This document shows positions 18,815 through 62,496 of a stretch of DNA of 64,000 bases, in pieces (positions within the stretch are counted from its first letter, which is position 1; the number at the start of each line of letters is the position of its first letter). A model generated the notes under the pieces. It had not been told where the DNA came from. It saw only the letters and a program-made list of their open reading frames with translations, and made no database searches. This DNA comes from Tubulanus polymorphus (Eukaryota > Animalia > Nemertea): positions 1,984,001 to 2,048,000 of the forward strand of contig NC_134036.1 in NCBI RefSeq assembly GCF_964204645.1, written 5' to 3'. Position numbers and translations under genes: made by a program.

Positions 18815-20797
18815 ATGGCTACAAGTTATCCGGATCGTTTCGAGATTTCCGTACCTTTCAAAGGACGTCGCGTTACCGTTTGGTCCGATCAGGATAATGA
18901 GTACAGAACGATACAAAATTACTTTTATCAGCCGCTGTTTAAATTGGAATCTGATCGAATAATTGCGGATGGAAATGTATTACAACTTGATATAACTCTG
19001 TGGTGTGAAGAATTAGAGGCTGCTATTGAACAAAAACTAAAAACCATCTATACAGGTCACGTAATAGCGGTGCAGATGATGCCGTTTGATGAGGTAAGAA
19101 TCTGTAATTCTCATCTTCAGTTTCATCATCACCCGCGTGTATATACTAGACGGGTGACCACTGCGAGGTGAGAGTCAAATAAAAAAAATCGTTTTATATT
19201 TCAGGTGAAATTAGAATGGAGAGATGCGCCCTCTGGTGTGGAGATACCGAATCATCCGATCCCGTTCAATCATCAACCTCAGAATCACGTGTTTATCGTT
19301 AAATGTGAAAATGAAGAAATGTGTGAAATTTACAAATCGCGACTTCAACAATCTCCGCAATCAATAGGTTCGGGTCTTGTGATCGGTGCTAGTCGTCACG
19401 GAAACGAATACGTGTTTAGAGTGAACACTGTACCGATCAGTGAAGCGCGAACAGTTCAACCAGACATTGATCAACGTCATCATTCCCTAATTGACAATGT
19501 CAAACTGTTTCATGATAATTTAGAAAATCAATTCTCTCAATTGAAGCAGACTATAGACACAGTTGAAGAGAGGCTGAACCGGTGCTGTACTGAACAACAA
19601 CTTGAAGAGAGGCTGAACCGGTGCTGTACTGAACAACAACTTGAAGAGAGGCTGAACCGGTGCTGTACTGAACAACAACTTGAAGAGAGGCTGAACCGGT
19701 TCTGTACTGAGCAACACCTTGAAGAGAGGCTGAACCGGTGCTGTACTGAACAACAACTTGAAGCATTAGAAGTTAAACTGAACAACGCTATCGATGACGT
19801 CACAGGGAGAACTATCAGTGATGTCATAGGGAGAATGGATAAAATGGAGAGATCTACTTATGACGTCATAGGAAGAGTGGATGAAGTGGAGAGTTTCATT
19901 GGTGTCGTCATTGATTCATTAACGATCAGTAAACAGGTTCAGACAGACTTCAGACCCAGTCTAGTGACGTCATTACCTGGTGAGCAGACGGGTCAACAGT
20001 CACGTATAATATGTGCGGACCTCTGGGGGTCCAGTGATATATATTACATGGATGATAATGATGTAATGAAGAGATATATAGAGTGTGTTGATGGTGATTA
20101 TGTACTAGGACTCTATACTGATAGTAACGGTCACCTGTTTGTAGTCGTGGAGAAAAACATGAAACTCTTCCTGAGAAAATATAAAGATCAGGACAAAGTG
20201 TTAGAGGAAGATGTCAGTGATATCGTGTCTATATGTGAAACACTAGTCATTCGCGGTAACAATATTTACATCCATTTAGATAGAGACGTTCGTGTTTTAC
20301 GTCTATTAGAAAACCCTGTAAACAGTTTAATTGATAGAAACCGTGTGAAAAAATATCAGCTCCCGGATGGAGAGTACGAATATAACAAATGTTTAGATGC
20401 CGACACGCGGGGACGCATGTTTGTATACTGTAATAGATCGGGAAGATTACTCTATCTAACAGCTGATGCGGAATTGATCAGTTTTATCAATGTGGAAGAT
20501 TCCGGACTAACATTTGATCCACTTGCGGGGTCCCCGTGTATAATCAATGATAAACATGTATTATTATCGGTAAACTCTAGGACTGGTAACAAAGGAGCCG
20601 TGATTAGTATGAGATATAATGATGAGGGGTTTATAGATCACCCGCGTATAGTATTGAACTCTACTGACAGAGCGACATATGAGATACACAAAATATGTGA
20701 CAGTAAGACTGTAGTTATCCGTCACTGGGATAACAGTTATAAAATGGACTCACTGCGAGTTTATAATATAAACACTGTACTCACTCGTACAAAATAG
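18815..20797 (+). CDS. Array gene A: N-terminal domain + 13-aa repeat stalk (5x) + predicted beta-propeller, 623 aa
   Basis: Exons 18815-19093 (GAG|GTAAGA) and 19205-20797 (TTTCAG|GTG), phase 0, open. NHL-like blade motifs (GLYTDSNGHLFV, LDADTRGRMFV). Confidence 0.88.
19565..19759 (+). repeat. Coding 39-bp VNTR (EERLNR[C/F]CTEQQL) x5
   Basis: Tandem units within gene A exon 2. Confidence 0.95.
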
Positions 20798-21068
20798 AAA
20801 TTCGGTTTTAATCAAACATGATATAACACGTTTCATCAAGGATTAAATCCATAGATAGTTGAAATATGTGAATTTCTTAAAAGTTAAAGAATGTATCTTT
20901 TTAGGACCTGTTTATGGAATGAGACTCTCATTCATTCTATTACGTTATATATCATAACAGAAAAAAAAGACTAAAAGTTAAGAAGAAAGAATTTGACGAA
21001 AAAAGTAATTTCTATTAGAATTATTGTGAGAATGTAATCAATTATGATTGTATCGCAAAAGAAAACAA

Positions 21069-22375
21069 TAGCGAAGTTTCCAGTTACCAGGGGCCATTTT
21101 GAGGCGGTCCCGCGGGTCCCGCATCGTTGGAAAGATTTAAACATTTTTTAAACTAAAACTTCTAGCGCGATTCATTGTAGTCCATTCGTCTTTTGGCACA
21201 AAAATTAAAGTCATGAATCGTTAAAAAGGTGACCATTTCTATTTTCTGATGGTGTTTATTATATTTTTCTCGACTGCAACAATCGAACACAGTTACAGTT
21301 TAAAAAAGATACGTCACTTTAAGGAAGGCGTACTTCTAAAAAAATTGGTAATTTTGTGTTATTGACTGTCACTTTTCCATGTTAAGATCTAGAATTTTTC
21401 ATTGAAGATAGAGTTTTATCTGAGGATTTTGTTGATACTACATTCGTAAAAATATCTTCATAGAAACGCGCGTGGCCATCGGTTGAGTCAAGAGCAAAGC
21501 GCGCACGAGTGGTTGACCGTCGATTTTCTGCATACCCGTTCTAAGCCAATTTCATGGAAATTTTAAAGTTTTTTTTAATTTAAATCATCGTTTGATTGTT
21601 TCCATGTTGAATTGAGGGTATTTGGTGTCTCCCCAGCATAATTAGATTTGAAACGATGCTTGATGTTTACAACGACCGCTTGTTTTTATTGAAAGACTGC
21701 ATCTTTGTGTCGTGTCACCTAGAAGCCGATCCTCTATTCGATCGACACTGCGCTCGGTCCCATGTTTAACGTTCGACGATTGAACATTCTAGGTCAGATA
21801 AGACAAGTTTCTTGAAATTTTTTCCTAATGCAAAGTATCTGATTTTAATCTATAAAAATATTTAGTATCTAGAAAATTGCCATGAAAATAGCGCAATACG
21901 CGCATGCAGAAACTCGACGGTCATCCACTCGTGCGCGCTTTGCTATTGACTCAACCGGTGGCCACGCGCGTTTCTATGAACATATTTTTACGAATGCAGT
22001 GTCAACAAAATCCTGAGATAAAACTCTATCTTCAATGAAAAATTCTACATTGTATCTCTTAACATGAAAAAGTTACAGTCAATAACACAAAATTACCAAT
22101 TTTTTGAGAAGTACGCCTTCCTTAAAGTGACGTATCTTTTTTAAACTGTAACTGTGTTCGATTGTTGCAGTCGAGAAAAATGAATTAAACACCATCAGAA
22201 AATAGAAATTGTCACCTTTTTAACGATTCATGACTTTAATTTTTGTGCTAAAAGAGTGGTGGACTACAATGAATCGCGCTTAAAGTTTTAGTTGAAAAAA
22301 TGTTAAAATCTGTCCAATCATGCGGGACCCGCGGGACCGCCTCAAAATGGCGCCTGGTCACTGGAAACTTCCCTA
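21069..22375. mobile_element. Non-autonomous foldback DNA transposon, ~460-bp TIRs, TAG...CTA ends (Academ-like termini)
   Basis: 21069-21535 is the inverted match of 21902-22375; no ORF; no clear TSD. Confidence 0.8.
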
Positions 22376-23218
22376 TTTGAAAAAAATATTAATTATAATT
22401 GGAATTATTTTAATAATGTATTTAATTACGATCTAATATTGTAAAAAGAAAATATAACAGAAATAAATATCATTATCATTATCCAGTTTTAAATTCCACT
22501 ATAGTCAAATTTGTCTCAGGTTTTCATATCATCCTGGATCATTCTGAGGACAGTTGTACAGTCATTGCTTAGAATTTTAGATCGTTTCTATAACCAATCT
22601 AACGAATCGCCCTGCAATACAGGACTGAGGGACCATGAGACCGTCCTATTATACCTGAGAGGAGATCAAATAATTAATGAAGGAAGCGGACTTATAGACC
22701 GTCCACTTAAAAGTACCAGACGAATGATGAGTTGAGCGAAGGATTGCGAAGGGTTGTCGCATCGTTTAAGGATTTATTGCAACAATTCACGATCGAATAG
22801 TTTTGAAGATTAGTTTTTCTTGAATTTTAAATTCAATCGGATGCAATTAATCTTTAAGAAATTCATCATCAAACAATGACAGAATTATTCGTTTGCATTT
22901 TCGAAAATAAAATATAATTTACTTTTTGTGAATCTCAAATGAGAGCCCAATATCGATTTTATTAGTTAGTCATGTTCTACAGTCGTTACGCTGACTTGAT
23001 CGCTTCATTTTGTAAATAGACCTATATTTCAAAGTCCTGATCGGTCAAAGTCGATTAAACCGGGTTACAGCGTATAGAATATCTAATGACGGTTATAACT
23101 ATTTCACGTAATGGCTAATGTTATAAAATGTACGCTTCCTGGTTCGGAGACTGTGGTTACTACAAAGGGTGGTTCTAAAAACCGCAATAGATGTCGCCTT
23201 CGCTTAATTTTCACTTGT

Positions 23219-24284
23219 TTCGCTGAAGCAAAAAAATTTCTCTATGATAAAGCTATGAAAGCTATGTATTCTATTATTCAAAAGGGCAGACGTTTGAAAC
23301 TTCCAGTAGATGTAATGTTTAAACTATTTGACATGTGCGTCGCTCCTATCGCGTTGTACGGTTGCGAAATCTGGGGATATGAAAACCTTGACTTATTAGA
23401 AAACCTCCACTGTTTATTTTGTAAAATTATCATGAAAGTTACAAAATATTCCCATAACCTTCAAGTATTAGCGGAGTTAGGACGTTATCCTATGTATATA
23501 AGCGTAAAGCGTAGAATGATTAATTTTTGGGTCAAAACGATTGAGTGCAAACAAAGTAAACTTAGTTCAATTCTCTATAAGATATCTTATAATTTATATC
23601 TGAATGATAGGTTTAAGAGCCCCTGGCTGTTATTTATTAAGAAGACTTTTGATGACTGTGGCCTTTCGTATATATGGACACAACAATCTATGGTAAACTC
23701 TAGGACTTCCCCAAAACAATTACACCGTTTACTCCGTGATCAGCATGTGCAAGAGACAGAATTTAGGCTAAATAATAACCCGTTATACATTAATTTTAGA
23801 CAATATAAGAAGGATATCAAATTTGAAAACTATATAAATCGGCTTGATGACGACTTAGTGACCAGCTTATTCCAGTTCAGGATTGGGTCTTATCTCCTAC
23901 CTGTATATAAATTGTCAAATCTCCATCTACCGAGAACCGATAGATTATGCCCCACCTGTAACGTTTTAGGCGACGAACTACATTTCATTTTTGACTGTAA
24001 ATTACTTACCGTATTCCGTGAAAGCTACCTAAATTCAAATACCTTTCGGAATCTTGATGTTTTAAAAAATCCAACTTTTAAACTTGCTAAATTTATCAAA
24101 TTAGGTCTGGATGTATATAGATCCCTCCGTTAGTGTGTGTAAATAGTATGTTGTAAATAACGTTTGTTATGTTTCAAAGTGCTTTTATCTACTGTTTTTG
24201 TAAATAATTGTAAATACTGTTTCTTTTCCTCCATATACCATGGAAATGGTTGGAGTGTAATAAATATTCGTATTCGTATTCGTA
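23219..24284 (+). mobile_element. 5'-truncated LINE (CR1/L2/Crack group) with ORF2 C-terminal part
   Basis: FD..V.PI.LYGCEIWG, ELGRYP and CPTC..GDELHFIFDC (CCHC) motifs; AATAAA plus (TATTCG)n tail; TTCACTTGT duplicated at 23210-18 and 24285-93. No RT catalytic core. Confidence 0.88.
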
Positions 24285-24324
24285 TTCACTTGTCGTAGAG
24301 TTTTCTCAGGAGACTAAGGAGGTT

Positions 24325-24992
24325 AGCTCGGTGGGTACAGGATGTTGCTCCGACCCAGGGGCGACTAGCTCGATGGTGGGTACAGGATGGCTCTCCGGCC
24401 CACATGTGATAAGCTCGGTGGTGGGTACAGGATGTTGCTCCGACCCAGGGGCGACTAGCTCGATGGTGGGCACAGGATGGCTCTCCGGCCCACATGTGAT
24501 AAGCTCGGTGGTGGGTATGGATGGCGCTCCTGCCCACAGGCGACTAGCTCGGTGGTGGGTACGGGATGTTGCTCCGACCCAGGGGCGACTAGCTCGATGG
24601 TGGGCACAGGATGGCTCTCCGGCCCACATGTGATAAGCTCGGTGGTGGGTACAGGATGGCGCTCCTGCCCACAGGCAACTAGCTCGGTGGTGGGTACAGG
24701 ATGTTGCTCCGACCCAGGGGCGACTAGCTCGATGGTGGGCACAGGATGGCTCTCCGGCCCACATGTGATAAGCTCGGTGGTGGGTACAGGATGGCTCTCC
24801 TGCCCACAGGCGACTAGCTCGTTGGTAGGCACAGGATGGCTCTCCTGCCCACAGGCGACTAGCGCGGTGGTGGGTACAGGATGGCTCTCCTGTCCACAGG
24901 CGACTAGCTCGATGGTGGGCACAGGACGGTGCTCCTGCCCACAGGCAACTAGCTCGGTGGTGGGCACAGGATGGCGCTCCAGCCCACAGGCG
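24325..24992. repeat. 45-bp GC-rich VNTR, about 15 units
   Basis: GGTACAGGATGGCTCTCCTGCCCACAGGCGACTAGCTCGGTGGTG and variants. Confidence 0.93.
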
Positions 24993-25385
24993 AATTCATG
25001 TTAGTAACATACGTAGGCTTACTTTTTACGCAGAAGATTTTTTCTTTCTGCATTTTGTGTCCAACCTCGTTCACCGGGACTTACGCCGAGCCACTACAGT
25101 TAACCAAGCTTAAATCATCATCAAATAAGTCATCGAATCACTCGTCATCTTTAATTCTATTTCTTTAATGTACTGGAGTAGGTATAAGTCATCATTTCGA
25201 TAAGTCAAAAAACGCTGAGAAGACTTAAGCAAGGTTGATTTGAAATTCCTAAATTAATCGAAATAGAAAAATAAAAAATGAAATAAAACTTGTTCTGGTG
25301 TAAGACATTTGGTCTGATCTCCCGTGATGAGAGGAAATAGGAGCGCGTTATCAGAAGATAGTGACATGTAGATTTCCAGGACCGC

Positions 25386-27108: not shown

Positions 27109-29164
27109 ATGGCTACAAGTAATCCGGATCGTTTCGAGATTTCCGTACCTTTCAAAGGACGTCGCGTTACCGTTTGGTCCGATCAGGATAATGAGTACAG
27201 AACGATACAAAATTACTTTTATCAGCCGTTGTTTAATTTGGAATCTGATCGAATAACTGCGGATGGAAATATATTACAACTTGATATAACTCTGTGGTGT
27301 GAAGAATTAGAGGCTGCTATTAAACACGAACTAAAAACCATCTATACAGGTCACGTAATAGCGGTGCAGATGATGCCGTTTGATGAGGTAAGAATCTGTA
27401 ATTCTCATCTTCAGTTCCATCATCACCCGCGTGTGATACTAGACGGGTGACCACTGCGAGGTGAGAGTCAAATAAAAAAATCGTTTTCTATTTCAGGTGA
27501 AATTAGAATGGAGAGATGCGCCCTCTGGTGTGGAGATACCGAATCATCCGATCCCGTTCAATCATCAACCTCAGAATCACGTGTTTATCGTTAAATGTGA
27601 AAATGAAGAAATGTGTGAAATCTACAAATCGCGACTTCAACAATCTCCGCAATCAATAGGTTCGGGTCTTGTGATCGGTGCTAGTCGTCACGGAAACGAA
27701 TACGTGTTTAGAGTGAACACTGTACCGATTAGTGAAGCGCGAACAGTTCAACCAGACATTGATCAACGTCATCATTCCCTAATTGACAATGTTAAACTGT
27801 TTCAAGATAATTTAGAAAATCAATTCTCTCAATTGAAGCACACTATAGACACAGTTGAAGAGAGGCTGAACCGGTGCTGTACTGAACAACAACTTGAAGA
27901 GAGGCTGAACCGGTGCTGTACTGAACAACAACTTGAAGAGAGGCTGAACCGGTGCTGTACTGAACAACAACTTGAAGAGAGGCTGAACCGGTTCTGTACT
28001 GAACAACAACTTGAAGAGAGGCTGAACCGGTGCTGTACTGAACAACAACTTGAAGAGAGGCTGAACCGGTGCTGTACTGAACAACAACTTGAAGAGAGGC
28101 TGAACCGGTGCTGTACTGAACAACAACTTGAAGAGAGGCTGAACCGGTGCTGTACTGAGCAGCAACTTGCAGCATTGGAAGTAAAACTGAATAAGACTAT
28201 CGATGACGTCACAGGAAGAACAATCAATGATGTCATAGGGAGAATAGATAAATTGGAGAGTTCTATTGGTGACGTCATTGATTCATTAACGATCAGTAAA
28301 CAGGTTCAGACAGACTTCAGTCCCAGTCTAGTGACGTCATTACCTGGTGAGCAGACGGGTCAACAGTCACGTATAATATGCGCGCAGTACTGGGAGTCCA
28401 GTTATATATATTACATGGATGATAATAATGTAATGAAGAGATATATAGAGTGTGATGGTGATGATTGTTTACTAGGACTCGATAAAGATAGTAACGGTCA
28501 CCTGTTTGTAGTCGTGGAGAATAACGAGAAACTCTGCCTGAGAAAATATAAAGATCAGGTCAAAGTGTTAGAGGAAGATGTCACTGATATTGTGTCTAGA
28601 TGTGGAACACTAGTTATTCGCGGTAACAATATTTACATCCAGTTAGATAGAGACGTTCGTGTTTTACGTCTATTAGAAAACCCTGTAAACAGTTTAATTG
28701 ATAGAAACCGTGTGAAAAAATATCAGCTCCCGGATGGAGAGTACGAATATATCAACAGTTTAGATGTCGACACGCGGGGACGCATGTTTGTATACTGTGA
28801 TAGATCGGGAAGATTACTCTTTCTAACAGCTGATGCGGAATTGATCAGTTTTATCAATGTGAAAGATTCCGGACTAACATTTGATCCACTTGAGGGGTCC
28901 CCGTGTATAATCAATGATAAACATGTATTACTATCGGTAAACTCTAGGACTGGTAACAAAGGAGCCGTGATTAGTATGAGATATAATAATGAGGGGTTTA
29001 TAGATCACCCGCGTATAGTATTGAACTCTGCAGACAGTGCGACATTAGAGATACACAAAATATGTGACAGTAACACTGTAGTTATCTGTCACTGGGATAA
29101 CAGTAATAAACCGGACTCACTGCGAGTTTATAATATAAACACTGTACTCACTCGTACACAATAA
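27109..29164 (+). CDS. Array gene B (8 stalk repeats), 648 aa
   Basis: Exons 27109-27387 and 27497-29164; paralog of gene A; repeats at 27857-28168. Confidence 0.88.
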
Positions 29165-29403: not shown

Positions 29404-29610
29404 GCCGTGATTAGTATGAGATATAATGATGAGGGGTTTATAGATCATCCGCGTATAGTATTGAACTCTGCAGACAATGCGACATTAGAGATACACAAAG
29501 TGTGTGACAGTAACGCTGTAGTTATCCATCACCGGGATATCAGTAGTAAACAGGACTCACTGCGAGCTTATAATATAAACACTGTACTCACTCGTACACA
29601 ATAAACACCC
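29404..29610 (+). pseudogene. Orphan duplicate of the last ~66 codons of the array gene (3' cassette 1)
   Basis: AVISMRYND...TVLTRTQ* open, with about 13 substitutions versus gene B; followed by a more decayed copy at ~29629-29730. Confidence 0.85.
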
Positions 29611-31853: not shown

Positions 31854-34213
31854 ATGGCTACAAGTAATCCGGATCGTTTCGAGATTTCCTTACCTTTCAA
31901 AGGGCGTCGCGTTAACGTTTGGTCCGATCAGGATAATGAGTACAGAACGATACAAAATTACTTTTATCAGCCGTTGTTTAATTTGGAATCTGATCGAATA
32001 ACTGCGGATGGAAATATATTACAACTTGATATAACTCTTTGGTGTGAAGAATTAGAGGCTGCTATTGCACAAAAACTAAAAACCATCTATACAAGTCACG
32101 TTATAGCGGTGCAGATGATGCCGTTTGATGAGGTAAGAATCTGTTAATGTCATCTTCAGCTTCATCATCATCCGCGTGTGATACTAGATGGGTGACCACT
32201 GCGAGGTGAGAGTCAAATAGAAAAAATCTTTTTATATTTCAGGTGAAATTAGAATGGAGAGATGCGCCCTCTGGTGTGGAGATACCGAATCATCCGATCC
32301 CGTTCAATCATCAACCTCAGAATCACGTGTTTATCGTTAAATGTGAAAATGAAGAAATGTGTGAAATCTACAAATCGCGACTTCAACAATCTCCGCAATC
32401 AATAGGTTCGGGTCTTGTGATCGGTGCTAGTCGTCACGGGAACGAATACGTGTTTAGAGTGAACACTGTACCGATCAGTGAAGCGAGGCCAGTTCAACCA
32501 GACATTGATCAACGTCTTAATTCCCTAATTGACAATGTCAAACTGTTTCATGATAATTTAGAAACTCAATTCTCTCAATTGAAGCACACAGTTGAAGAGA
32601 GACTGAACCGGTTCTGTACTGAACAACAACTTGAAGAGAGGCTGAACCGGTTCTGTACTGAACAACAACTTGAAGAGGGGCTGAACCGGTTCTGTACTGA
32701 ACAACAACTTGAAGAGAGACTGAACCGGTTCTGTACTGAACAACAACTTGAAGAGAGGCTGAACCGGTGCTGTACTGAACAACAACTTGAAGAGAGGCTG
32801 AACCGGTTCTGTACTGAACAACAACTTGAAGAGAGGCTGAACCGGTGCTGTACTGAACAACAACTTGAAGAGAGGCTGAACCGGTGCTGTACTGAACAAC
32901 AACTTGAAGAGAGGCTGAACCGGTTCTGTACTGAACAACAACTTGAAGAGAGGCTGAACCGGTGCTGTACTGAGCAACAACTTGAAGAGAGGCAGAACCG
33001 GTTCTGTACTGAACAACAACTTGAAAAGAGGCTGAACCGGTTCTGTACTGAACAACAACTTGAAGAGAGGCTGAACCGGTGCTGTACTGAGCAACAACTT
33101 GAAGAGAGGCTGAACCGGTTCTGTACTGAACAACAACTTGAAGAGAGGCTGAACCGGTGCTGTACTGAGCAACAACTTGCAGCATTGGAAGTAAAACTGA
33201 ATAAGACTATCGATGACGTCACAGGAAGAACAATCAATGATGTCATAGGGAGAATAGATAAATTGGAGATATCTATTGGTGACGTCATAGGGAGAATGGA
33301 TGAAGTGGAGAGTTCTATTGGTGACGTCATTGATTCATTAACGATCAGTAAACAGGTTCAGACAGACTTCTCACCTAACCTAGTGACGTCATTACCTGGT
33401 GAGCAGACGGGTCAACAGTCACGTATAATATGCGCGGAGTACGGGGAGTGCAGTGATATATATTACATGGATGATAATGATGTAATGAAGAGATATATAG
33501 AGTGTGTTGATGATTATGTACGAGGACTCGATACAGATAGTAACGGTCACCTGTTTGTAGTCGTGGAGAAAAACGGGAAATTCTACCTGAGAAAATATAA
33601 AGATCAGGACAAAGTGTTAGAGGAAGATGTCACTGATATTGTGTCTCTATGTGGAACACTAGTTATTCGCGGTAACAATATTTACATCCAGTTAGATAGA
33701 GACGTTCGTGTTTTACGTCTATTAGAAAACCCTGTAAACAGTTTAATTGATAGAAACCGTGTGAAAAAATATCAGCTCCCGGATGGAGAGTACGAATATA
33801 TCAACAGTTTAGATGTCGACACGCGGGGACGCATGTTTGTATACTGTAATAGATCGGGAAGATTACTCTATCTAACAGCTGATGCGGAATTGATCAGTTT
33901 TATCAATGTGGAAGATTCCGGACTAACATTTGATCCACTTGCGGGGTCCCCGTGTATAATCAATGATAAACATGTATTACTATCGGTAAAGTCTAGGACT
34001 GGTGACAAAGGAGCCGTGATTAGTATGAGATATAATGATGAGGGGTTTATAGATCACCCGCGTATAGTATTGAACTCTACTGACAGTGTGACATGTGAGA
34101 TACTCAAAATATGTGACAGTAACACTGTAGTTATCCGTCACTGGGATAACAGTAATAAACCGCACTCGCTACGAGTTTATAATATAAACACTGTACTCAC
34201 TCGTACAAAATAG
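31854..34213 (+). CDS. Array gene C (15 stalk repeats), 749 aa
   Basis: Exons 31854-32132 and 32243-34213; repeats at 32594-33178. Confidence 0.88.
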
Positions 34214-37705: not shown

Positions 37706-37744
37706 TTCACTTGTCGTAGAGTTTTCTCAGGAGACTAAGGAGGT

Positions 37745-42751: not shown

Positions 42752-42952
42752 GCCGTGATTAGTATGAGATATAATGATGAGGGGTTCATAGATCTCCCGC
42801 GTATTGTAATGAACTCTGCAGACAATGCGACATTAGAGATACACAAAGTGTGTGACAGTAACACTGTAGTTATCCATCACCGGGATAACAGTAGTAAACA
42901 GGACTCACTGCGAGCTTATAATATAAACACTGTACTCACTCGTACACAATAA
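42752..42952 (+). pseudogene. 3' cassette 2 (orphan duplicate of the gene 3' end)
   Basis: Homolog of 29404-29610. Confidence 0.85.
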
Positions 42953-49077: not shown

Positions 49078-49920
49078 TTTGAAAAAAATATTAATTATTA
49101 TTGGAATTATTATAATAATGTATTCAATTACGATCTAATATTGTAAAAAGAAAATATAACACAAATAAATATTATTATCATTATCCAGTTTTAAATTCCA
49201 CGATAGTCAAATTTGTCTCAGGTTTTCATATCATCCTGGATCATTCTGAGGACAGTTGTACAGTCATTGCTTAGAATTTTAGATCGTTTCTATAACCAAT
49301 CAAGCGAATCGCCCTGCAATACAGGACTGAGGGACCATGAGACCGTCCTATTATACCTGAGAGGAGATCAAATAATTAATGAAGGAAGCGGACTTATAGA
49401 CCGTCCACTTAAAAGTACCAGACGATTGAGGAGTTGAGCGAAGGATTGCGAAGGGTTGTCGCATCGTTTAAGGATTTATTGCAACAATTCACGATCGAAT
49501 AGTTTTGAAGATTAGTTTTTCTTGAATTTTAAATTCAATCGGATGCAATTAATCTTTAAGAAATTCATCATCAAACAATGACAGAATTATTCGTTTGCAT
49601 TTTCGTAAATAAAATATAATTTACTTTTTGTGAATCTCAAATGAGAGCCCAATATCGATTTTATTAGTTAGTCATGTTCTACAGTCGTTACGGTAACTTG
49701 ATCGCTTCATTTTGTAAATAGACCTATATTTCAAAGTCCTGATCGGTCAAAGTCGATTAAACCGGGTTACAGCGTATAGAATATCTAATGACGGTTATAA
49801 CTATTTCACGTAATGGCTAATGTTATAAAATGTACGCTTCCTGGTTCGGAGACTGTGGTTACTACAAAGGGTGGTTCTAAAAACCGCAATAGATGTCGCC
49901 TTCGCTTAATTTTCACTTGT

Positions 49921-50986
49921 TTCGCTAAAGCAAAAAAATTTCTCTATGATAAAGCTATGAAAGCTATGTATTCTATTATTCAAAAGGGCAGACGTTTGAA
50001 ACTTCCAGTAGATGTAATGTTTAAAATATTTGACATGTGCGTCGCTCCTATCGCGTTGTACGGTTGCGAAATCTGGGGATATGAAAACCTTGACTTATTA
50101 GAAAACCTCCACTGTTTATTTTGTACAATTATCATGAAAGTTACAAAATATTCCCATAACCTTCAAGTATTAGCGGAGTTAGGACGTTATCCTATGTATA
50201 TAAGCGTAAAGCGTAGAATGATTAATTTGTGGGTCAAAACGATAGAGTGCAAACAAAGTAAACTTAGTTCAATTCTCTATAAGATATCTTATAATTTATA
50301 TCTGAATGATAGGTTTAAGAGCCCCTGGCTGTTATTTATTAAGAAGACTTTTGATGACTGTGGCCTTTCGTATATATGGACACAACAATCTATGGTAAAC
50401 TCTAGGACTTCCCCAAAACAATTACACCGTTTACTCCGTGATCAGCATGTGCAGGAGACAGAATTTAGGCTAAATAATAACCCGTTATACATTAATTTTA
50501 GACAATATAAGAAGGATATCAAATTTGAAAACTATATAAATCGGCTTGATGACGACTTAGTGACCAGCTTATTCCAGTTCAGGATTGGGTCTTATCTCCT
50601 ACCTGTAAATCAATTGTCAAATCTCCATCTACCGAGAACCGATAGATTATGCCCCACCTGTAACGTTTTAGGCGACGAACTACATTTCATTTTTGACTGT
50701 AAATTACTTACCGTATTCCGTGAAAGCTACCTAAATTCAAATACCTTTCGGAATCTTGATGTTTTAAAAAATCCAACTTTTAAACTTGCTAAATTTATCA
50801 AATTAGGTCTGGATGTATATAGATCCCTCCGTTAGTGTGTGTAAATAGTATGTTGTAAATAACGTTTGTTATGTTTCAAAGTGCTTTTATCTACTGTTTT
50901 TGTAAATAATTGTAAATACTGTTTTTTTTCCTCCATATACCATGGGGATGGTTGGAGTGTAATAAATATTCGTATTCGTATTCGTA
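49921..50986 (+). mobile_element. 5'-truncated LINE, copy 3
   Basis: Same truncation point, TSD and tail as copy 1. Confidence 0.88.
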
Positions 50987-51024
50987 TTCACTTGTCGTAG
51001 AGTTTTCTCAGGAGACTAAGGAGG

Positions 51025-52324
51025 TTAGCTCGGTGGGTACAGGATGTTGCTCCGACCAAGGGGCGACTAGCTCGATGGTGGGCACAGGATGGCTCTCCGG
51101 CCCACATGTGATAAGCTCGGTGGTGGGTATGGATGGCGCTCCTGCCCACAGGCGACTAGCTCGGTGGTGGGTACAGGATGTTGCTCCGACCCAGGGGCGA
51201 CTAGCTCGATGGTGGGCACAGGATGGCTCTCCGGCCCACATGTGATAAGCTCGGTGGTGAGTACAGGATGGCTCTCCTGCCCACAGGCGACTAGCTCGTT
51301 GGTAGGCACAGGATGGCTCTCCTGCCCACAGGCGACTAGCTCGGTGGTGGGTACAGGATGGCTCTCCTGCCCACAGGCGACTAGCTCGATGGTGGGCACA
51401 GGATGGCGCTCCTGCCCACAGGCGACTAGCTCGGTGGTGGGTACAGGATGTTGCTCCGACCCAGGGGCGACTAGCTCGATGGTGGGCACAGGATGGCTCT
51501 CCGGCCCACATGTGATAAGCTCGGTGGTGAGTACAGGATGGCTCTCCTGCCCACAGGCGACTAGCTCGTTGGTAGGCACAGGATGGCTCTCCTGCCCACA
51601 GGCGACTAGCTCGGTGGTGGGTACAGGATGGCTCTCCTGCCCACAGGCGACTAGCTCGATGGTGGGCACAGGATGGCGCTCCTGCCCACAGGCGACTAGC
51701 TCGGTGGTGGGTACAGGATATTGCTCCGACCCAGGGGCGACTAGCTCGATGGTGGGCACAGGATGGCTCTCCGGCCCACATGTGATAAGCTCGGTGGTGA
51801 GTACAGGATGGCTCTCCTGCCCACAGGCGACTAGCTCGTTGGTAGGCACAGGATGGCTCTCCTGCCCACAGGCGACTAGCTCGATGGTGGGCACAGGACG
51901 GTGCTCCTGCCCACAGGCGACTAGCTCGGTGGTGGGTACAGGATGGCTCTCCTGCCCACAGGCGACTAGCTCGATGGTGGGCACAGGATGGCGCTCCTGC
52001 CCACAGGCGACTAGCTCGGTGGTGGGTACAGGATGTTGCTCCGACCCAGGGGCGACTAGCTCGATGGTGGGCACAGGATGGCTCTCCGGCCCACATGTGA
52101 TAAGCTCGGTGGTGAGTACAGGATGGCTCTCCTGCCCACAGGCGACTAGCTCGTTGGTAGGCACAGGATGGCTCTCCTGCCCACAGGCGACTAGCTCGGT
52201 GGTGGGTACAGGATGGCTCTCCTGCCCACAGGCGACTAGCTCGATGGTGGGCACAGGATGGCGCTCCTGCCCACAGGCGACTAGCTGGGTGGTGGGCACA
52301 GGATGGCGCTCCTGCCCACAGGCG
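51025..52324. repeat. 45-bp VNTR, about 29 units, with a 270-bp higher-order period
   Basis: The TTGCTCCGAC variant recurs at 51181, 51451 and 51721. Confidence 0.93.
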
Positions 52325-54437
52325 AATTCATGTTAGTAACATACGTAGGCTTACTTTTTACGCAGAAGATTTTTTCTTTCTGCATTTTGTGTCCAACCTC
52401 GTTCACCGGGACTTACGCCGAGCCACTACAGTTAACCTAGCTTAAGTCATCATCAAATAAGTCATCGAATCACTCGTCATCTTTAATTCTATTTCTTTAA
52501 TGTACTGGAGTAGGTATAAGTCATCATTTCGATAAGTCAAAAAACGCTGAGAAGACTTAAGCAAGGTTGATTTGAAATTCCTAAATTAATCGAAATAGAA
52601 AAATAAAAAATGAAATAAAACTTGTTCTGGTGTAAGACATTTGGTCTGATCTCCCGTGATGAGAGGAAATAGGAGCGCGTTATCAGAAGATAGTGACATG
52701 TAGATTTCCAGGACCGCTATATAAAGCTGGGTTCACTCTCAGTCCTGGTCTCCACACAGATATCCGTCGTTCTACAATCTTAGTACAACCATACTGTGGC
52801 GAATCGATTTCAAGGTCATTGACACTGCGCTATATTTGTCAAAATTATTAAAAGAACTCATTTTGCGTTTTTCTAGGCACCGCTTCGATATAAGTTAATG
52901 TTGGAGGATATTGTAAGGACGCTATACCCGGTTACTCATGTTGTAGTAAGGACAGTAAAAGGATTTATCTGGTAGGGCTGGGCTTCGTCTGGACCTGTTG
53001 TACATTATTATTTACCTAATACCCATACATAATGTTTCAATTCAGAATTAGGACGTTCCATGTGTTCAATCGACGTTGCTTTTTCCAGATCAGCGATTCC
53101 TTACTTTCTCATCATCTGGATCTGTTTGCTGCCGATACCCGGAGGTTGACTAGACCTACACTGATTCATTCGAGACCTTGTTAGGTAATCCATGATGCTC
53201 TACACTGAAATAAATTTCGGGTGAGCGAAGCGGTTTAATATTGGGTACCGTTATAGAATGTATATGTTTTGTGTTAAATCAACAGTTCTAATGTTGATTT
53301 TTGCGTTACATTTTCAGACAGATGCAGCCTCTCCTGCCGATACTGTTAACTTGGATGTTACATCTCCCAAGGTGAATGTACATGTAATGAAAATCCATTC
53401 CTGAATTTGGTGAGTAGACATTGTTTGTTTTATACGGAACTTGGGTGGGGTTTAAGTTTATTCAAACGGATAGAACCTCGTTACAACAAACACAGATACA
53501 GTAGACTCTTAACTGGAAGTTAATTTCTGACCAGTGACTTGGTTCAGTCGATACTTCGAGTTTGAAAAACTAAAATTATCATGAATTGTTGCAATATATG
53601 TTTTCAAATTAAATGTGGTAATTCACCTTTTACAGATTTTAGTTCAAGTCGAGTTCTTATGAGCAGCGATTTACCAGATAAAGTTAACTATTGATTTATT
53701 CCATAAACTTGATTATGAAATGTAAAAAAAAAACAGATTTTGTCGCCCGCTCGAAACCGGTTCAATCGTCCCAGACATTTATACATTAATGTTCCATAGT
53801 TCAATGACGTGCACTTGACTCTTGACACATTCGTGAGTCATATTTGAAAAAAATCCGTGATAACAAAGTCATGCGCATAGATTATTTGAAAATGATCCGA
53901 AATATTAATTCGCCACTTGAAGACAATTTTCATACGGCGGATGTCATTTGGTGGTTTCCTGCCCTTGGCCTTTATGATAATCAAGAGATTCGCTTTACGG
54001 ATGCTTTCAAATACTAATCAAACACCAGATTTCAGATCACTTTCCAAGTGGGAACGTAGAACTTGAAACTCTTGTTATCAATTTTATTTGTGTCTTTTCA
54101 AAGTATGTCGACAAAAAACTGCGTTCATGACATTTGACAGGAATGTCAAAATACCGATTTGTCACCCTGATTAGAATCAGACCCTGGACATATCACATGA
54201 ATTTTCTTATAAAACACCTGAGTTGATTACTTATTATCTAGTTCACAGGAAACCATTTCTAGTATGTCTATAATATTTATCAGACACATTAAACTGCGTC
54301 ACTAGATCTGATAATCGGGTTCGTAACCGAAAATACCGGTCACCGCGATTAGAATCAGACCTTGGGACTAATATCACCTGACTGTTCTACGCCCAAACCG
54401 CATTCACAATTTCTGGTGTTAATAACTGACGGTCAAC

Positions 54438-57400
54438 ATGGCTACAAGTAATCCGGATCGTTTCGAGATTTCCGTACCTTTCAAAGGACGTCGCGTTACC
54501 GTTTGGTCCGATCAGGATAATGAGTACAGAACGACACAAAATTACTTTTATCAGCCGCTGTTTAATTTGGAATCTGATCGAATAACTGCGGATGGAAATA
54601 TATTACAACTTGATATAACTCTGTGGTGTGAAGAATTAGAGGCTGCTATTAAACACGAACTAAAAACCATCTATACAGGTCACGTAATAGCGGTGCAGAT
54701 GATGCCGTTTGATGAGGTAAGAATCTGTAATTCTCATCTTCAGTTTCATCATCACCCGCGTGTGATACTAAACGGGTGACCACTGCGAGGTGAGAGTCAA
54801 ATAGAAAAAATCTTTTTATATTTCAGGTGAAATTAGAATGGAGAGATGCGCCCTCTGGTGTGGAGATACCGAATCATCCGATCCCGTTCAATCATCAACC
54901 TCAGAATCACGTGTTTATCGTTAAATGTGAAAATGAAGAAATGTGTGAAATCTACAAATCGCGACTTCAACAATCTCCACAATCAATAGGTTCGGGTCTT
55001 GTGATCGGTGCTAGTCGTCACGGGAACGAATACGTGTTTAGAGTGAACACTGTACCGATCAGTGAAGCGCGAACAGTTCAACCAGACATTGATCAACGTC
55101 TTAATTCTCTAATTGACAATGTCAAACTGTTTCATGATAATTCAGAAAATCAATTCTCTCAATTGAAGCGGACTATAGACACAGTTGAAGAGAGGCTGAA
55201 CCGGTGCTGTACTGAACAACAACTTGAAGAAAGGCTGAACCGGTTCTGTACTGAACAACAACTTGAAGAGAGGCTGAACCGGTTCTGTACTGAACAACAA
55301 CTTGAAGAGAGGCTGAACCGGTGCTGTACTGAACAACAACTTGAAGAGAGGCTGAACCGGTGCTGTACTGAACAACAACTTGAAGCATTAGAAGTTAAAC
55401 TGAACAACGCTATCGATGACGTCACAGGGAGAGTGGATGAAGTGGAGAGTTCTATTGGTGACGTCATTGATTCATTAACGATCAGTAAACAGGTTCAGAC
55501 AGACTTCTTACCTGACCTAGTGACGTCTATACCTGGTGAGCAGACGGGTCAACAGTCACGTATAATATGTGCGGACTACGAGGAGTCCAGTGATATATAT
55601 TACATGGATGATAATAATGTAATGAAGAGATATATAGAGTGTGTTGATGGTGATTATGTACTTGGACTCGATACAGATAGTAACGGTCACCTGTTTGTAG
55701 TCGTGGAGAAAAACGAGAAACTCTGCCTGAGAAAATATAAAGATCAGGACAAAGTGTTAGAGGAAGATGTCACTGATATTGTGTCTGGATGTGGAACACT
55801 AGTTATTCGCGGTAACAATATTTACATCCAGTTAGATAGAGACGTTCGTGTTTTACGTCTATTAGAAAACCCTGTAAACAGTTTAATTGATAGAAACCGT
55901 GTGAAAAAATATCAGCTCCCGGATGGAGAGTACAAATATATCAACAGTTTAGATGTCGACACGCGGGGACGCATGTTTGTATACTGTAATAGATCGGGAA
56001 GATTACTCTATCTAACAGCTGATGCGGAATTGATCAGTTTTATCAATAACACGTTCCCAAATGTTTTGATACTTTCTCAGTTTGTATCAAATATATTGCC
56101 AATTTCTGGTCCTTGAGTCCTGAAAAATGATAAATTTACAGCGCAAAATCGTACAAACGTGTCAATTATACTTCTAAACACTTTATTTGCGGACCAGTTT
56201 ATGAATTGAGTGTGGGCCATAGAGCGCTATATCCGCCTGTGATCTCGACTTTCAATTTATTACGTAAGCTATTCGTGAACAAAATGCGGCCGGCGCACAA
56301 TAGAAACTTCGCTCTATGTATTCTTTCATTACCGCCGACAAAGAGGACCGATATTTCGCAAATTGGATTCGGGAGGTTTAAACCTCCCAAGGTCAAATCA
56401 CTAAAATTGTGACCTTCGTGGAGATTATCTAAAAAGCCGATGGTAATCAAATTTAGCAGAACTTTTAACCCAAACGTTCAATGGTTTGAAAATCTTTCAA
56501 TGGCATTCCTAAGTATTTGATGAAAGTTGAGAAATCATAAGATATTCATATAACCATGGACTCTAAAACCTAAATCGTTTAAGAGTCCCTGGTATAAAAA
56601 AAAACTTTGCATAACGAAGAAGCAAAAATTCGAATCCGAACCATCTGTTTGGAATTGATTCTTATGAAATGGAAACAAATGCGTGAGCACTACTCATTGA
56701 TTCGTTCATTATTGTACAATATGTTTCATTTTTTGACCGTAAGACGTTGACATTATGTCAATTTCATTCAATTTACTTTGCGGCTTTACAACGGCTATTT
56801 CACTGGTTCTGCGTGATGAGATAATTCTGATTAAAGTTATTGTATTAATTTCTACATGTATATACGTAATGATACTCTTTCTGAATAAAAGATGCAAGTT
56901 ATTCGAATCCCCACCATTGTTCTCTACAATGTACGTTAATCAAACTCACGATAAAACCAGAGCCAAAACCATGGACTCAAAAACGAAGAATCCGTGGTCA
57001 AACATACAATTTTAATTTCCCCGTTAGTTCACTGATGCCGTCAGTTTCTATCGAATGCAAGGATTCTAGCCAATCAGAGAGGCGCATGTACACATCCATT
57101 GGCATACTTAGTTCTAGTACAACTTAGACAATAATCAAGGTTCGAGCCAATGTCAGTAACTAGAATATGTTCTTTCATCAAATATAAATATCTCAGCAGT
57201 AGTCAGTTAGTTGAGTTTGTTTGACTTGTTTTGTATTTCATCAATCAATCTATTTCATTTTATTTTAAAGTACAAACTAAACGCTTGAATTGCTTATAAC
57301 ACGACCAGGTATGAATTAGAATAGATCGGCTTAATATTTCGAATGCAAATTTGGCGATTAAGCAATCGAAAATTCGAAGTGCTTGAGAAATTTATCAATA

Positions 57401-60400
57401 CGCCCATTACTCCGAATAGCGATAAGTTCATTGACACATGTGACCATTGTTTTGTTACTTTCGATAAGCGATTCGAATAAGCTATGCGACAGCTAACGAC
57501 AGCACAATCGCAATATCAACAGAAGTTCATTTTATCCTACATGATGAGGCTAAATTCAGTGAAATCGATCGTGTTCTGAAATATATATTTTCCTGGATAC
57601 ATTTTGTTTATTGTAGCTATTCTATGCGGTTTTATACATTAACCTGCTATAACATATTGACCGTTTTCAAGAACCCAAAAATTACAATTTTCTGGGAATC
57701 CTAATTTGTCCTAAACGATATTCCAACTATTATTTTGTTAATTATTCAACTATCATCACTAACTGGGTAAGTTAGTTGAACTTACATAAAGATATATCAT
57801 TAGGGACACTTCAATTTCACACCGTTCAATATCATAAGGGAACAAAATTCTTTGAAACTTGGTTAATAGTAGTTCTTAAGACTAGGTTTTGTTTCCGGAA
57901 TTTACTAAATGTACCAGTTCTAATAATTCACTCATTGAAGCTTCTATACATTAGAAGTGAAAGCTCGTGCGTCGAAATAAATAGTTAACCTTTAAAGTAC
58001 TACTCGTCTCTTCATTTAAATTCAAATAATATAAGTCTTTATTGATTCTTTTTTGATGGAATATGCATAACTTTTTCTGGGCAAATTTCTATATTCTGTC
58101 AAGTCATGGACTCTAAAACGATTTAGACATTAAAACGTTTTAGAGTCCATGGTCAAGGTATTTTGGCTATAACGAGTATAACTAACTCCCTGGGGTAACG
58201 ATGTGGCTGATGAAATGATCTCTCCCATTGTAATCCCACCATTCAATTACTCATTGTATAACAACTCTCACAATTAAGCCTCGGACTCTTAAACGAATTA
58301 TGAGTGCATGCTTTAGTATAGGCTCTGATATAGAGCATATTGTCTTGATTTAGAACATGTATGCATAAACTCTAGGCTGCAAAGAAATACGTTTTCAGCG
58401 GCTTTAATCGAGTTAAATCTTTCGTGATAGATTAACACAGAGAGGCGGCACCCAATCGCTGCTTATTGACATTAGGCACAAGTCACTGTTATGTTCATTA
58501 GTAAAACTAATATAGAATGAATAAGTGAGGAGGGAAAATGTATAAATTAAATTTATAAATGAATTTATAAGAATTTAGCATGCATCGGAGTGCACTTAAA
58601 TTGGATTATTACAAAATAACTCACTTCAAAATTTATGATATTGTTTCATTGATATTTATTACTTTAAAGCGATTCACTTTAAGAACTTTGGTCAACAATA
58701 AGTCTGACCTGCAAATCAAATCATCGGGAGAACAAAATACTGTTTCAAAAAATTATATTGCTAATACATTCCTAATCTTAATCTCTCGCCATAAACCTAC
58801 TGGATTTAGGGCCTGGGGCATTTTACATGGTTGTAGGTAAAATTCCCCTAGGTAAAATCCTCACTTGGCGATTTTTCAAGAACATTTGAAAGCACGATAT
58901 CTATTCAAACATATTCATCTACAATACAACTGCAATATATTTAACTGTGCATTGATCTCTTTTGTTGAAATAAATCTTTAAATAAATTCATAGAATAAAT
59001 GAAATTCATGAACTTTTTATTCATACTTTCTTTTCATATTTTATTCATACTATCTTTTAATTCGAACTAAATAACTCTTTTTTACTTGTGGTATAGTATG
59101 CTTATGATATGGATTCGATTTACGTATCAATATTTTCATGTTGACGGGAGCCTGATGATGGCTAATAGCATTAGCCGAAACATTGCTCGTAGAACATTTG
59201 ATTTTTAGCTGAATTCATTGTGGGATTTGTCTCGTTATTCACCATACACGGATTGTGTATTTCCTTCTCATTTTCATGTTGGTTTTGAACAACTTAAATT
59301 TTGCGATTCTAATACCTTATTAACTTTAGATGACAGTAATACCTTCAATTTACATGTAAAATATGATCACTGCTGAAAGTGTAATAAGGAATATATATTT
59401 ACTCCAGTGACAATATTTTGATTCAAAGATTTAATTCAATCATCTAGTCCGAGTCTGTATGGTAAAACTTCTGGCTAACCAATAGCTAACCGAATACCGA
59501 CAAAAGAAGGTGGTCGCTTAAAAATTAGTTTATTTATGCAACAGGAATCTATCTTGATTTCAAGGGCACTTCAATTAATCGTTTCAATAGTGACCACTTC
59601 AAATTAGCCAGTAGTTTAAATGACCGAATTCAATCAACCGATTCGTATCCTAAGAATGAGAATTGTATCTAACCACAGTAGTCATTCTTCATCAAACGTT
59701 CGGTCATCATATTATACATCTATACATCATTACTATCATCTTCAGTTAATAGAAGTGCAATAAAATCTAGAATCTATGAGTTGAGTTTTTTTTAACATAA
59801 TAAATTGTGTTGATTTTATGTTAGTTAAATCAAATATTGGGAATATTTTACCGGGGGATTTTTACTTTGGGGATAATAAGCTAAATTATTTTATATCATC
59901 GGTTTTCATTAAGAAAAAAAACAACTATTAATCTTAACGTCACTTATATTTCTTTTGGAGCATTAAGATTCTTTCATTGAATTAAATATGTTATTTCGTA
60001 CAATAGTTCATGACAGTGCGTCATTCACGCTTATATGTACAAAACTTCTTTACAGAGTTCAAAATATAAACCAACAATCTCATCTCAAGCATGTACTAGC
60101 GCTGACGTTATGGGATAAAACCAAGTCTCGATTAATTGCCTAAAATGTGGGTACATTCATTCAAATCAGGACTAAAATACGCTTATATGAATATCTTGCT
60201 TGATATCATTTTACATTACGGGTGTCTCATAGGCCTGGTTTTACTTGTACATTGTCATCAATTGATTAAACATCCCAACTAACTTCTGTATTTACTCATG
60301 GCTTAATCACTGGTATTCAATATCTAGTCGGCTATAGAAAGACTAACCCGATAAAATTCCATTAACCGTTCGTCCAGAGTCGAACACTCGTTAATTCGCA

Positions 60401-62496
60401 ACGATTTTAAAGAAAGAAAATGATTGCATGAAATCTACTTTTCGTATCAATCGGCGTCCAATCACTTAAACCATCCTAAACACAGTAGTGTAGTAGTTTG
60501 TGTCTATTTGCTTTTGCTGATGTCATTTAACATAACAATGGAAATGTATTCGTTTATTTGGAAATTATATGAAGATATGGAGTAATCATGTGACAAATCA
60601 AATTATTACTGCAAGGCAAAACATAGCGCACTTCAGATATATGATATGGCCTTAAAGACTTTTCATATATTAACAGTCCAGTTTAACGTCTATTGATATG
60701 AATAGTCCAGTTTTGATATGACTGTCGCAACAGTTGGAATAAAACCTATGAAATCTAGGGGCATTTATCTCATGAAATTTAGATTTGAGATAATTGTATT
60801 GTATTGTGTGAGGATTAAACACTTCAATGGCTGGTGATTATTTGTGATGAAGTAATCAGTGAGATGGACTGTTGATGTAGCCTTGATTGAGGCACTCGGG
60901 TCAGATAATATTTTTACATAAAACAGTGCATTTGTTAAAGCAGAACACATGATTTTAAACTAGATATAAGTAGCTAAACCGTTAATTTTCATTCCTAACT
61001 TTTCATCACTCCCGATTATCAAAAATAATTCAACAGTTTGATTAACGGATAGTTGCAGTTAACAACATTTCTATCTGATAGAGAAGGTATACAGGTATAC
61101 AGAGGAACAAGAAAAGAACATCCAACTAGACACTGAAAAATCTTTATTCCGGTTTTTACCAGGGGCCTTTACCTTGGGGTATATTTAACTAGGGGATTTT
61201 TACTGAAAGGGACCTTTACGGGGCGAGTTTTTACCCGATCACATCGATTATTGAATGACATGTTCGATAAATCATGACAAAAACTGGTATCACTGGTACA
61301 ATTTGCTAATTTTCGCTATTCGGGTGGTTCTGTAGATTATTGGCTATACCGTTGGTAACTGACTAGCTATTTGTATCACTGATCGGACTGTGAAAATATA
61401 GCTTTGACAAAACCACAACGAGAAATGAATCAAATGCAATATTTTACTCGAAAACGAGCATAACCATGGATTCAGTAACGTTTTTTTACAATCCATGGCT
61501 GAAATGACGCTATTGAAAAAATCAATGAGAAATACTGCCTCCGATTTTTATGACTAAAATATAGGAATGAATTCCGAACAGAATCAAATCAGGTTGTTAT
61601 TATTGGTATTGTGTATACATTTCATTTATTAGATATTTCAAGTAATTCGTGTAATTAGGAAAAACTCGATCCAATAATGGGTTTTTCTTTCGGTTTTAAG
61701 TAATTTACAACTTACCAAATATGGACTACATGGTTTGACATTAAAACCAGTGAGCATTATGGTATCAAGTTCAACCAAAATTGATTACGATCGGCCTTTC
61801 GTAGAATCTCCCTGAAGGTCACAATTTTAGTAAATTGACCTTGGGAGGTTTAAACCTCCCGAATCCAATTAGCAAAATATCGGTCCTCTTTGTCGGTGAC
61901 AATAAAAGTACCCTGCGCGTAACTTTCTATTGTGCGCCTGCCGCGTTTTGGGCACGAGTAGCTTACGTAATCTTAATTGAAAGTTGAGATCACAGGCAGA
62001 TATTGAGGTCTATGGCCCACACATAACATCATAAATTGGTCAGGAAATAAAGTGTTTTGTGGTATAGATGACACGTTTGTACGATTTTACACTGTAAATT
62101 TATCATTTTTCAGGACTTTCAGGACCTAAAATCGGCAATATTTTTGATACAAACTGAGAAAGTATCAAAACATTTGAGAACGCGTTCAATGTGGAAGATT
62201 CCGGACTAACATTTGATCCACTTGCGGGGTCCCCGTGTATAATCAATGATAAACATGTATTACTATCGGTAAACTCTGGGACTGGTAACAAAGGAGCCGT
62301 GATTAGTATGAGATATAATGATGAGGGGTTTATAGATCACCCGCGTATAGTATTGAACTCTACTGACAGTGTGACAGGTGAGATACACAAAATATGTGAC
62401 AGTAACACTGTAGTTATCCGTCACTTGGATAACAGTAATAAACCGGACTCACTGCGAGTTTATAATATAAACACTGTACTCACTCGTACAAAATAG
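54438..62496 (+). pseudogene. Array gene F (5 stalk repeats), interrupted by a transposon
   Basis: Exon 54438-54716; exon 2 is split into 54827-56047 and 62191-62496, which rejoin in frame (..ISFIN|VEDSGL..) once the insertion and one TSD are removed. Confidence 0.9.
56048..62186. mobile_element. 6.1-kb DNA transposon with ~400-bp imperfect TIRs and a 4-bp TSD (CAAT); no recognisable transposase
   Basis: Ends AACACGTTCCCAAATGTTTTGATACTTTCTCAG / CTGAGAAAGTATCAAAACATTTGAGAACGCGTT; CAAT at 56044-47 and 62187-90; the empty site is seen in genes A-E. Confidence 0.92.

Follow-up and report, generated by a model that had tools for sequence, protein, structure and literature searches.

We analysed a 64,000-nucleotide stretch of the genome of the nemertean Tubulanus polymorphus (positions 1,984,001-2,048,000 of the chromosome-scale contig C12; hereafter the window), which carries six two-exon genes on the + strand, A to F. 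Their products combine a conserved head of about 185 aa, a stalk in which a 13-aa repeat occurs 5-15 times, and a C-terminal domain of 296 aa that is predicted to fold as a propeller. The top face of this propeller takes amino acid replacements at about twice the synonymous rate, whereas purifying selection acts on the scaffold, the bottom face and the head. With moderate confidence, we therefore read the array as encoding Tubulanus-specific cytosolic modular recognition proteins, in which the top face would bind a ligand, the molecules would cluster, and the output would pass through a caspase or through the head.

The six genes are arranged as three tandem units of about 13 kb with two genes each, and share a common plan: a 279-nt exon 1 (from ATG to GAG/gtaaga), a GT-AG intron of 108-110 nt with a tttcag acceptor, and a single long exon 2. 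The original prediction of six modular genes in tandem with stalks of variable length was correct as to number and stalk, but not every gene is intact. Genes A-E are, and the propeller of gene F is interrupted by a 6.1-kb transposon, which splits it at 56047/62182 and leaves both pieces open. In the NCBI annotation the genes bear names such as "uncharacterized protein LOC141914060". The array extends past the window, with two further genes just outside and close relatives 270 kb and 690 kb off. Throughout, database searches used single-exon sequences or NCBI models, and exons 1 and 2 were joined solely for the hydropathy count. The genes and their parts are as follows.

Gene A (LOC141914060, P0001, 623 aa), 18815-20797, + strand: exon 1 18815-19093, intron 19094-19204, exon 2 19205-20797
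Gene A parts, + strand: 13-aa repeat array 19553-19756 (5 units); propeller 19907-20794
Gene B (P0005, 648 aa), 27109-29164, + strand: exon 1 27109-27387, exon 2 27497-29164
Gene B parts, + strand: repeat array 27845-28165 (8 units); propeller 28274-29161
Gene C, 31854-34213, + strand: exon 1 31854-32132, exon 2 32243-34213
Gene C parts, + strand: repeat array 32591-33175 (15 units); propeller 33326-34210
Gene D, 40596-42511, + strand: exon 1 40596-40874, exon 2 40985-42511
Gene D parts, + strand: repeat array 41333-41536 (5 units); propeller 41621-42508
Gene E, 45210-47492, + strand: exon 1 45210-45488, exon 2 45600-47492
Gene E parts, + strand: repeat array 45948-46454 (13 units); propeller 46605-47489
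Gene F, 5' part, 54438-56047, + strand: exon 1 54438-54716, exon 2 54827-56047; propeller cut after blade 4 (…LISFIN)
Gene F, 3' part, 62182-62496, + strand: propeller blades 5-6, open up to the stop codon

In the NCBI model LOC141914175 (P0017, 340 aa), the greater part of gene E is spliced out, starting within the 13-aa array and reaching blade 2, and the model stops early; the repeats have probably misled the annotation at this gene.

Predicted fold of the C-terminal domain

We modelled the 296-aa C-terminal domain with AlphaFold from an alignment of 17 paralogues, and obtained a predicted local distance difference test score (pLDDT) of 90.6 and a predicted template modelling score (pTM) of 0.90. 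The model contains 24 strands in six four-stranded blades, with the ring closed by the N-terminal strand, and thus agrees with the NHL-type propeller proposed originally. The NHL domains of TRIM-NHL proteins ranked first in both Foldseek and VIA-align, led by Mei-P26 (Z 25.0) and Brat (24.5) and followed by Thin, NHL-2, TRIM3, TRIM2 and LIN-41/TRIM71 (Z 25.0-22.3, root-mean-square deviation about 3 Å over about 250 residues). The top 13 VIA-align matches were all TRIM-NHL domains (Z 25.0-22.6), with non-NHL six-bladed propellers close behind at Z of about 22. By its model, the domain is a six-bladed NHL-like propeller.

At the level of sequence, Pfam scans of the array proteins gave no match to the NHL repeat (PF01436) at E <= 1, and the same Pfam model, run across the T. 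polymorphus genome, found 33 repeats in other genes and none in the propeller family. A profile of the propeller likewise gave no match at E <= 10 among PDB sequences. When it was aligned by hhalign with the canonical NHL domains of the worm, the probability was 4.7%, even though a G-L-x-T-D-x-N-G-x-L-F-V motif (G-x-x-x-D-x-x-G-x-hydrophobic) falls in register. Judged by its sequence, the propeller family is thus not a member of the TRIM-NHL family.

The structural ranking nevertheless raises the question of whether the array encodes fast-evolving post-transcriptional regulators like Brat, LIN-41 and Mei-P26, with a top face that binds RNA, for example in the germline. All of the nearest folds belong to TRIM-NHL domains, which bind RNA and do so on the top face (PMC4015489), and the order of head, repeat stalk and NHL-like propeller echoes that of RING/B-box, coiled coil and NHL. 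Indeed, TRIM-NHL proteins (Brat, Mei-P26, LIN-41/TRIM71, TRIM2/3, NHL-2) also place a six-bladed NHL-type propeller at the C terminus, after an N-terminal module and an elongated repeat or helical region, and also use the top face for the ligand (PMC4015489). However, the array proteins have neither RING nor B-box, share just 8-14% identity with TRIM-NHL proteins and lack an NHL profile signal. Furthermore, the top zone of the array propellers (the top-face loops with two adjoining strand residues) is net acidic by residue count (-5 to -15), whereas the top faces of RNA-binding NHL domains are electropositive, as in the basic, RNA-binding top face of Brat (PMC4015489). TRIM-NHL proteins are few and conserved as orthologues, in contrast to the dozens of tandem genes under diversifying selection found here, and housekeeping regulators would not be expected to show a ratio of nonsynonymous to synonymous rates (dN/dS, omega) above 1 across dozens of arrayed genes, nor to be fused to a caspase. 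We thus consider a role in RNA regulation very unlikely.

Variation, selection and exchange on the propeller

Within the beta-meander of a propeller, every other loop lies on the same face. The loops were labelled here from the DSSP strand list alone, and the b-c and d-a loops define the propeller top face (PMC4015489). Among the eight closest genes, 35 of the 67 residues in the b-c and d-a (odd-numbered) loops vary, as against 7 of the 55 in the a-b and c-d (even-numbered) loops (P 4e-6); when two strand residues adjoining each loop are included, the top zone holds 52 varying residues out of 114, compared with 28 out of 182 elsewhere (P 2e-8). The motif series from which variable patches were first recognized are all present (DLWGSSD/QYWESSY/EYGECSD/DYEESSD/G-WKSSD, the series beginning with EKNMKLF, VS[IRLG]C, YNKCL/YINSL/YIKCF, and the series beginning with DRATYE and SYKMD). 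The expectation of about two such patches per blade on a single face was borne out, since they fall on the alternate b-c and d-a loops, which by topology form the top face.

We then compared nonsynonymous and synonymous change. Over the whole propeller, pairwise omega averages about 1 and spans 0.5-2.6. When distinct codon changes were counted without a tree, an approach robust to recombination, the domain separated into two parts: the top zone has an omega of 1.9 (P 0.023 for >1), the remainder of the domain one of 0.56 (P 0.02 for <1), the nonsynonymous:synonymous ratios of the two differ (P 0.0016), and the bottom-face loops alone give 0.39. The mean pairwise dN of the top zone is 0.105, as compared with a dS of 0.053, an intron divergence of 0.041 and an intergenic spacer divergence of 0.025-0.04, and top-zone dN exceeds dS in all 28 gene pairs. 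The diversifying selection postulated at the outset is therefore found in the top zone, with dN/dS below 1 elsewhere and the variable sites concentrated on one face. Outcomes named beforehand as counting against that prediction, namely dN/dS <=1, scattered or buried variation and a C terminus other than a propeller, were checked and none was found.

Site models pointed the same way. For the local genes, M2a was preferred over M1a with a likelihood ratio test (LRT) statistic of 100 and 13% of sites at omega of about 8, as computed with our own approximate code, in which relative branch lengths were fixed from M0; since the models assume a single tree and recombination is rampant, such tree-based tests are to be read cautiously. 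The head of the same genes served as a control, with an omega of 0.30 (range 0.2-0.3) and a positive class of only 0.9% of sites. Its first part, exon 1, differs at 11 of 93 residues across the six genes, in line with the few differences reported before, and the identical start of exon 2, put earlier at about 78 aa, extends to 82 aa, in which 7 of 246 nucleotides differ, all synonymously. Given these seven synonymous differences, it is selection, and not simply the recent origin of the genes, that maintains the 82 invariant residues.

An array on chromosome 8 provided a replicate of 13 genes, all 13 with open frames. Its LRT statistic was 227; of its 25 selected sites, 18 map to the top zone (P 5e-4), and six sites are common to the local clade (P 0.002).

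It could be argued instead that the genes are young duplicates under relaxed constraint, the product of a recent expansion by birth and death, drifting towards pseudogenes, so that the clustered differences simply mark the least constrained loops. The whole-domain omega of about 1 fits that view, as do the transposon-disrupted copy (one of six), the roughly 45 fragments with stop codons in the genome, and the general tendency of loops to be the least constrained part of a propeller. Relaxation, however, cannot lift dN over dS or over intergenic divergence, and the top-zone dN is roughly double dS and triple the spacer value. Nor would it spare the bottom-face loops, which are equally exposed and yet constrained, or the head of the same genes. 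Furthermore, frames are open in 21 of the 22 copies examined (8 of 9 among the local genes), and the same sites recur in the independent chromosome-8 clade. Relaxed constraint is thus quite unlikely as an account of the pattern, and we retain the view that the top face is diversified by selection.

The variable patches form a limited set of variants recombined as mosaics among the paralogues. The gene tree of the local paralogues is poorly resolved, the four-gamete test fails for 58% of informative site pairs, neighbouring sites included, and the patch variants CDGDDCLL, KKNKKLC, DLWGSSD and QSSRDVR are each common to a different set of genes. Such sharing is indicative of gene conversion over short tracts or of the same variants having been selected repeatedly. 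A PHI-like recombination test did not reach significance (P 0.15), since adjacent sites are already saturated with incompatibility.

Family, partner domains and proposed function

We next consider how far the family extends and what the propeller is joined to. Among 1.84 billion representative proteins, the propeller profile retrieved 12 representative clusters, all from T. polymorphus, and the head was likewise found in T. polymorphus only. The genome of this species contains at least 92 propeller matches, of which about 45 are full-length and open, and about 43 head matches, almost always in frame with a propeller; the family thus comprises at least 40 genes. A literature search found no published description of it, and with no homologues detected outside T. 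polymorphus, the family appears to be undescribed, as had been supposed.

The caspase domain Peptidase_C14 is absent from all six window genes in Pfam scans and present in the paralogues P0008, P0014, P0015 and P0016. At a minimum of seven loci, an uninterrupted reading frame runs from the propeller into the first exon of the caspase. The Peptidase_C14 match is full in both P0008 (E 3e-67), where the domain is complete and carries SHG and QACRG motifs, and P0016 (E 6e-57), where the cysteine loop is rewritten. In the propeller tree, caspase-linked propellers nest inside head-linked chromosome-8 genes with 100/99 support, and a second caspase-linked lineage is separate. One recognition module has thus been joined to two kinds of partner more than once. 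The propeller-caspase paralogues offer the best new support for a role in death or defence, and that support is indirect.

The head, encoded by exon 1 and the start of exon 2, was modelled as a two-lobed alpha/beta domain (pLDDT 83). Foldseek found nothing in the PDB at E <= 0.001, a wide VIA-align search reached Z 6.7 at best (ArgR oligomerisation domain), no higher than background, and a protein-atlas feature search was blank. In Pfam and PADLOC, only scattered sub-threshold matches appeared (DUF6650, E 0.02; Cas6b, E 0.003). The ESM Atlas contains unnamed bacterial proteins of about 750 aa that resemble the head at a template modelling score of 0.56-0.64, and BFVD gave a single match, a Medusavirus protein of unknown function (E 5.6e-5). 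Among heads that are 21-40% identical (alignment A2), C127 is invariant and H116 nearly so (P0001 numbering, stretch 116-127), and the two may form a functional pair. An E2/UBC-like reading of this conserved His…Cys stretch was dropped, as no UBC fold match was obtained.

The stalk is built from a 13-aa (39-bp) repeat, ERLNRCCTEQQLE, present in 5, 8, 15, 5, 13 and 5 units in genes A to F, respectively, and followed by 1-3 units of a 14-aa repeat. Galaxin_repeat matches in the stalk were taken as an artefact of di-cysteine periodicity and not as homology to the secreted galaxins, since the proteins have no signal peptide. In P0018 (G000 C8, about 759.5-762.7 kb), a head and a propeller are followed by about 40 copies of a 14-aa repeat (GDVIGRVDKVEKST) and a second propeller, which shows that large expansions of the stalk repeat occur, as do propeller duplications within one gene.

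As the original prediction held, the array proteins have no detectable signal peptide or transmembrane (TM) segment, with no hydrophobic stretch (maximum 19-residue hydropathy about 1.1), and Pfam scans of the exon-2 open reading frames (ORFs) and of P0001:1-200 found no RING or B-box at E <= 1. Pfam scans also found no NACHT or NB-ARC domain, only a sub-threshold NNH2 match (E 0.07) inside the repeat array. Since they lack a signal peptide and TM segments, we take the proteins to be cytosolic.

For the recognition proteins proposed here, we envisage the following mechanism. The top face would bind fast-evolving ligands, of which proteins from parasites, viruses or other genetic antagonists are the most likely, and ligand binding would cluster the molecules. 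In the propeller-caspase paralogues, the output would then be direct, through proximity activation of the fused caspase, and in the window genes it would run through the conserved head held on the stalk. The repertoire would be generated by gene duplication, short-tract gene conversion and repeat slippage.

Several points weigh against this interpretation. Caspases have non-immune roles too, the head has no informative fold match, and the window genes have no recognisable effector domain. Oligomerisation through the stalk is unsupported, as a homodimer prediction for two stalk copies (P0001:180-335), with a score of 0.01, speaks neither for nor against it. The top face is assigned from strand topology (DSSP), not from measured coordinates, and the top zone was defined after the alignment had been seen, although the pure loop classes were not. 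Recombination can inflate single-tree site-model tests. The zone-average omega of the local genes is just modestly above 1, and in the chromosome-8 array the tree-free omega of 1.24 in the top zone and 0.80 in the rest is not significant.

A more specific claim, that the family is an anti-pathogen immune system, is possible but in our estimation somewhat short of an even chance. More tentative again is its full form, in which lineage-specific innate immunity would be built on one hypervariable NHL-like propeller, either fused to a caspase as a one-protein sensor-executioner without a CARD/DED adaptor or linked by a repeat stalk of variable length to a conserved head of a kind not seen before, and in which germline duplication and patch-by-patch conversion of about 12 top-face loops would supply the diversity.

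The same features might also arise from another kind of genetic conflict, such as silencing of transposons or selfish elements, a toxin-antidote or drive system, or intracellular self/non-self incompatibility like that of fungal HET/NWD proteins. Remnants of transposons and satellites are interspersed among the arrays, the family is restricted to a single species or lineage, and the fungal HNWD proteins carry the same signature of a hypervariable propeller face, paralogue exchange and cell death while acting in allorecognition (PMC1805685). Sequence alone does not separate conflict from immunity. However, allorecognition in animals normally takes place at the cell surface, whereas the array proteins have no signal peptide or TM segment, and the 13-kb unit contains no evident gene for a toxin or antidote partner. 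We regard such a conflict as rather unlikely, and continue with the cytosolic recognition proteins as the preferred reading.

Compared with known systems, these proteins would resemble two in their way of working. The HNWD/NWD NLRs of fungi (Podospora het-d, het-e and het-r) share a positively selected propeller interaction face, exchange among paralogues and coupling to cell death (PMC1805685, PMC2873952), but their propellers are of the WD40 type, contain near-identical internal repeats and are accompanied by NACHT and HET domains, whereas the array genes have no NACHT, their blades are mutually dissimilar, and patches are exchanged one by one between genes. The antiviral TRIM proteins with a B30.2/SPRY domain (TRIM5alpha, teleost finTRIM) likewise combine a constant N-terminal module, a coiled-coil-like spacer and a C-terminal recognition domain with positively selected surface loops, and have also expanded by tandem duplication (PMC2657112). 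In contrast, the recognition domain here is a propeller and not SPRY, the head is not RING/B-box, and some members carry a caspase. The family belongs to neither system, since RING, B-box, SPRY, NACHT and the NHL profile were all looked for and not found, and would represent a new form of the diversified intracellular receptor theme.

The P0008-type paralogues further resemble CARD/DED initiator caspases in placing an N-terminal interaction domain before a complete Peptidase_C14. Here, however, the prodomain is a hypervariable propeller and not a death-fold adaptor, which implies direct sensing instead of recruitment to an adaptor platform, and the window genes have no caspase domain. These paralogues would suggest a directly ligand-gated caspase, with a bearing on how death-fold adaptor pathways may be bypassed or preceded.

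To our knowledge, almost no immune genetics has been described for nemerteans. The family would add an NHL-like propeller to the short list of diversified intracellular sensor folds in animals (LRR and SPRY, with WD40 in fungi). The conserved head, with its weak structural echoes in bacterial and giant-virus proteins, is a candidate for a new signalling or effector module, and the locus provides a small natural case of patches being exchanged combinatorially among paralogues.

Other DNA in the tandem units

The intervening DNA, thought at first to be almost invariant, is less uniform than that, as it is 96-97.5% identical from unit to unit. Two further features of the units are the transposon in gene F and the filler of the long spacers.

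Transposon in gene F, 56048-62181, no strand assigned: non-autonomous DNA type, about 6.1 kb, with a (T)CAAT target duplication
A-B spacer filler, 23111-25088, no strand assigned: repeated in C-D (36527-38555) and E-F (49813-52340)

The transposon has terminal inverted repeats of about 440 bp (56048-56490 / 61741-62186) and no ORF of 90 aa or more. Its insertion looks recent, since both halves of the propeller are still open. The NCBI model LOC141914253 (P0012) runs from gene F into the transposon.

In the long spacers, a 340-aa ORF (23111-24133, 36527-37549 and 49813-50835) is more than 97% conserved across the three units. It has no Pfam match and terminates in a C-x2-C … H-x4-C motif reminiscent of the C terminus of non-LTR retrotransposon ORF2, and is probably the tail of such an ORF2. 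A 45-bp satellite (24250-25088, 37616-38555 and 50996-52340) differs in copy number from unit to unit and gives rise to spurious long ORFs on both strands. Just downstream of genes A, C and E, the long spacer also contains an inverted duplication of about 500 bp with 91% identity (21067-21565 / 21873-22377 in the first unit, with counterparts in the others).

Finally, genes B, D and F are each followed, about 240 bp further downstream, by a partial propeller copy corresponding to its last 66 codons (29404-29603, 42752-42951 and 62737-62936), with about 90% nucleotide identity and an open frame that has its own stop. These copies may be relics, may serve as an alternative 3' exon or may act as donors in conversion; their patch variants (ADNATL, HHRDISSKQD) are absent from the local genes and resemble those of the chromosome-8 paralogues.

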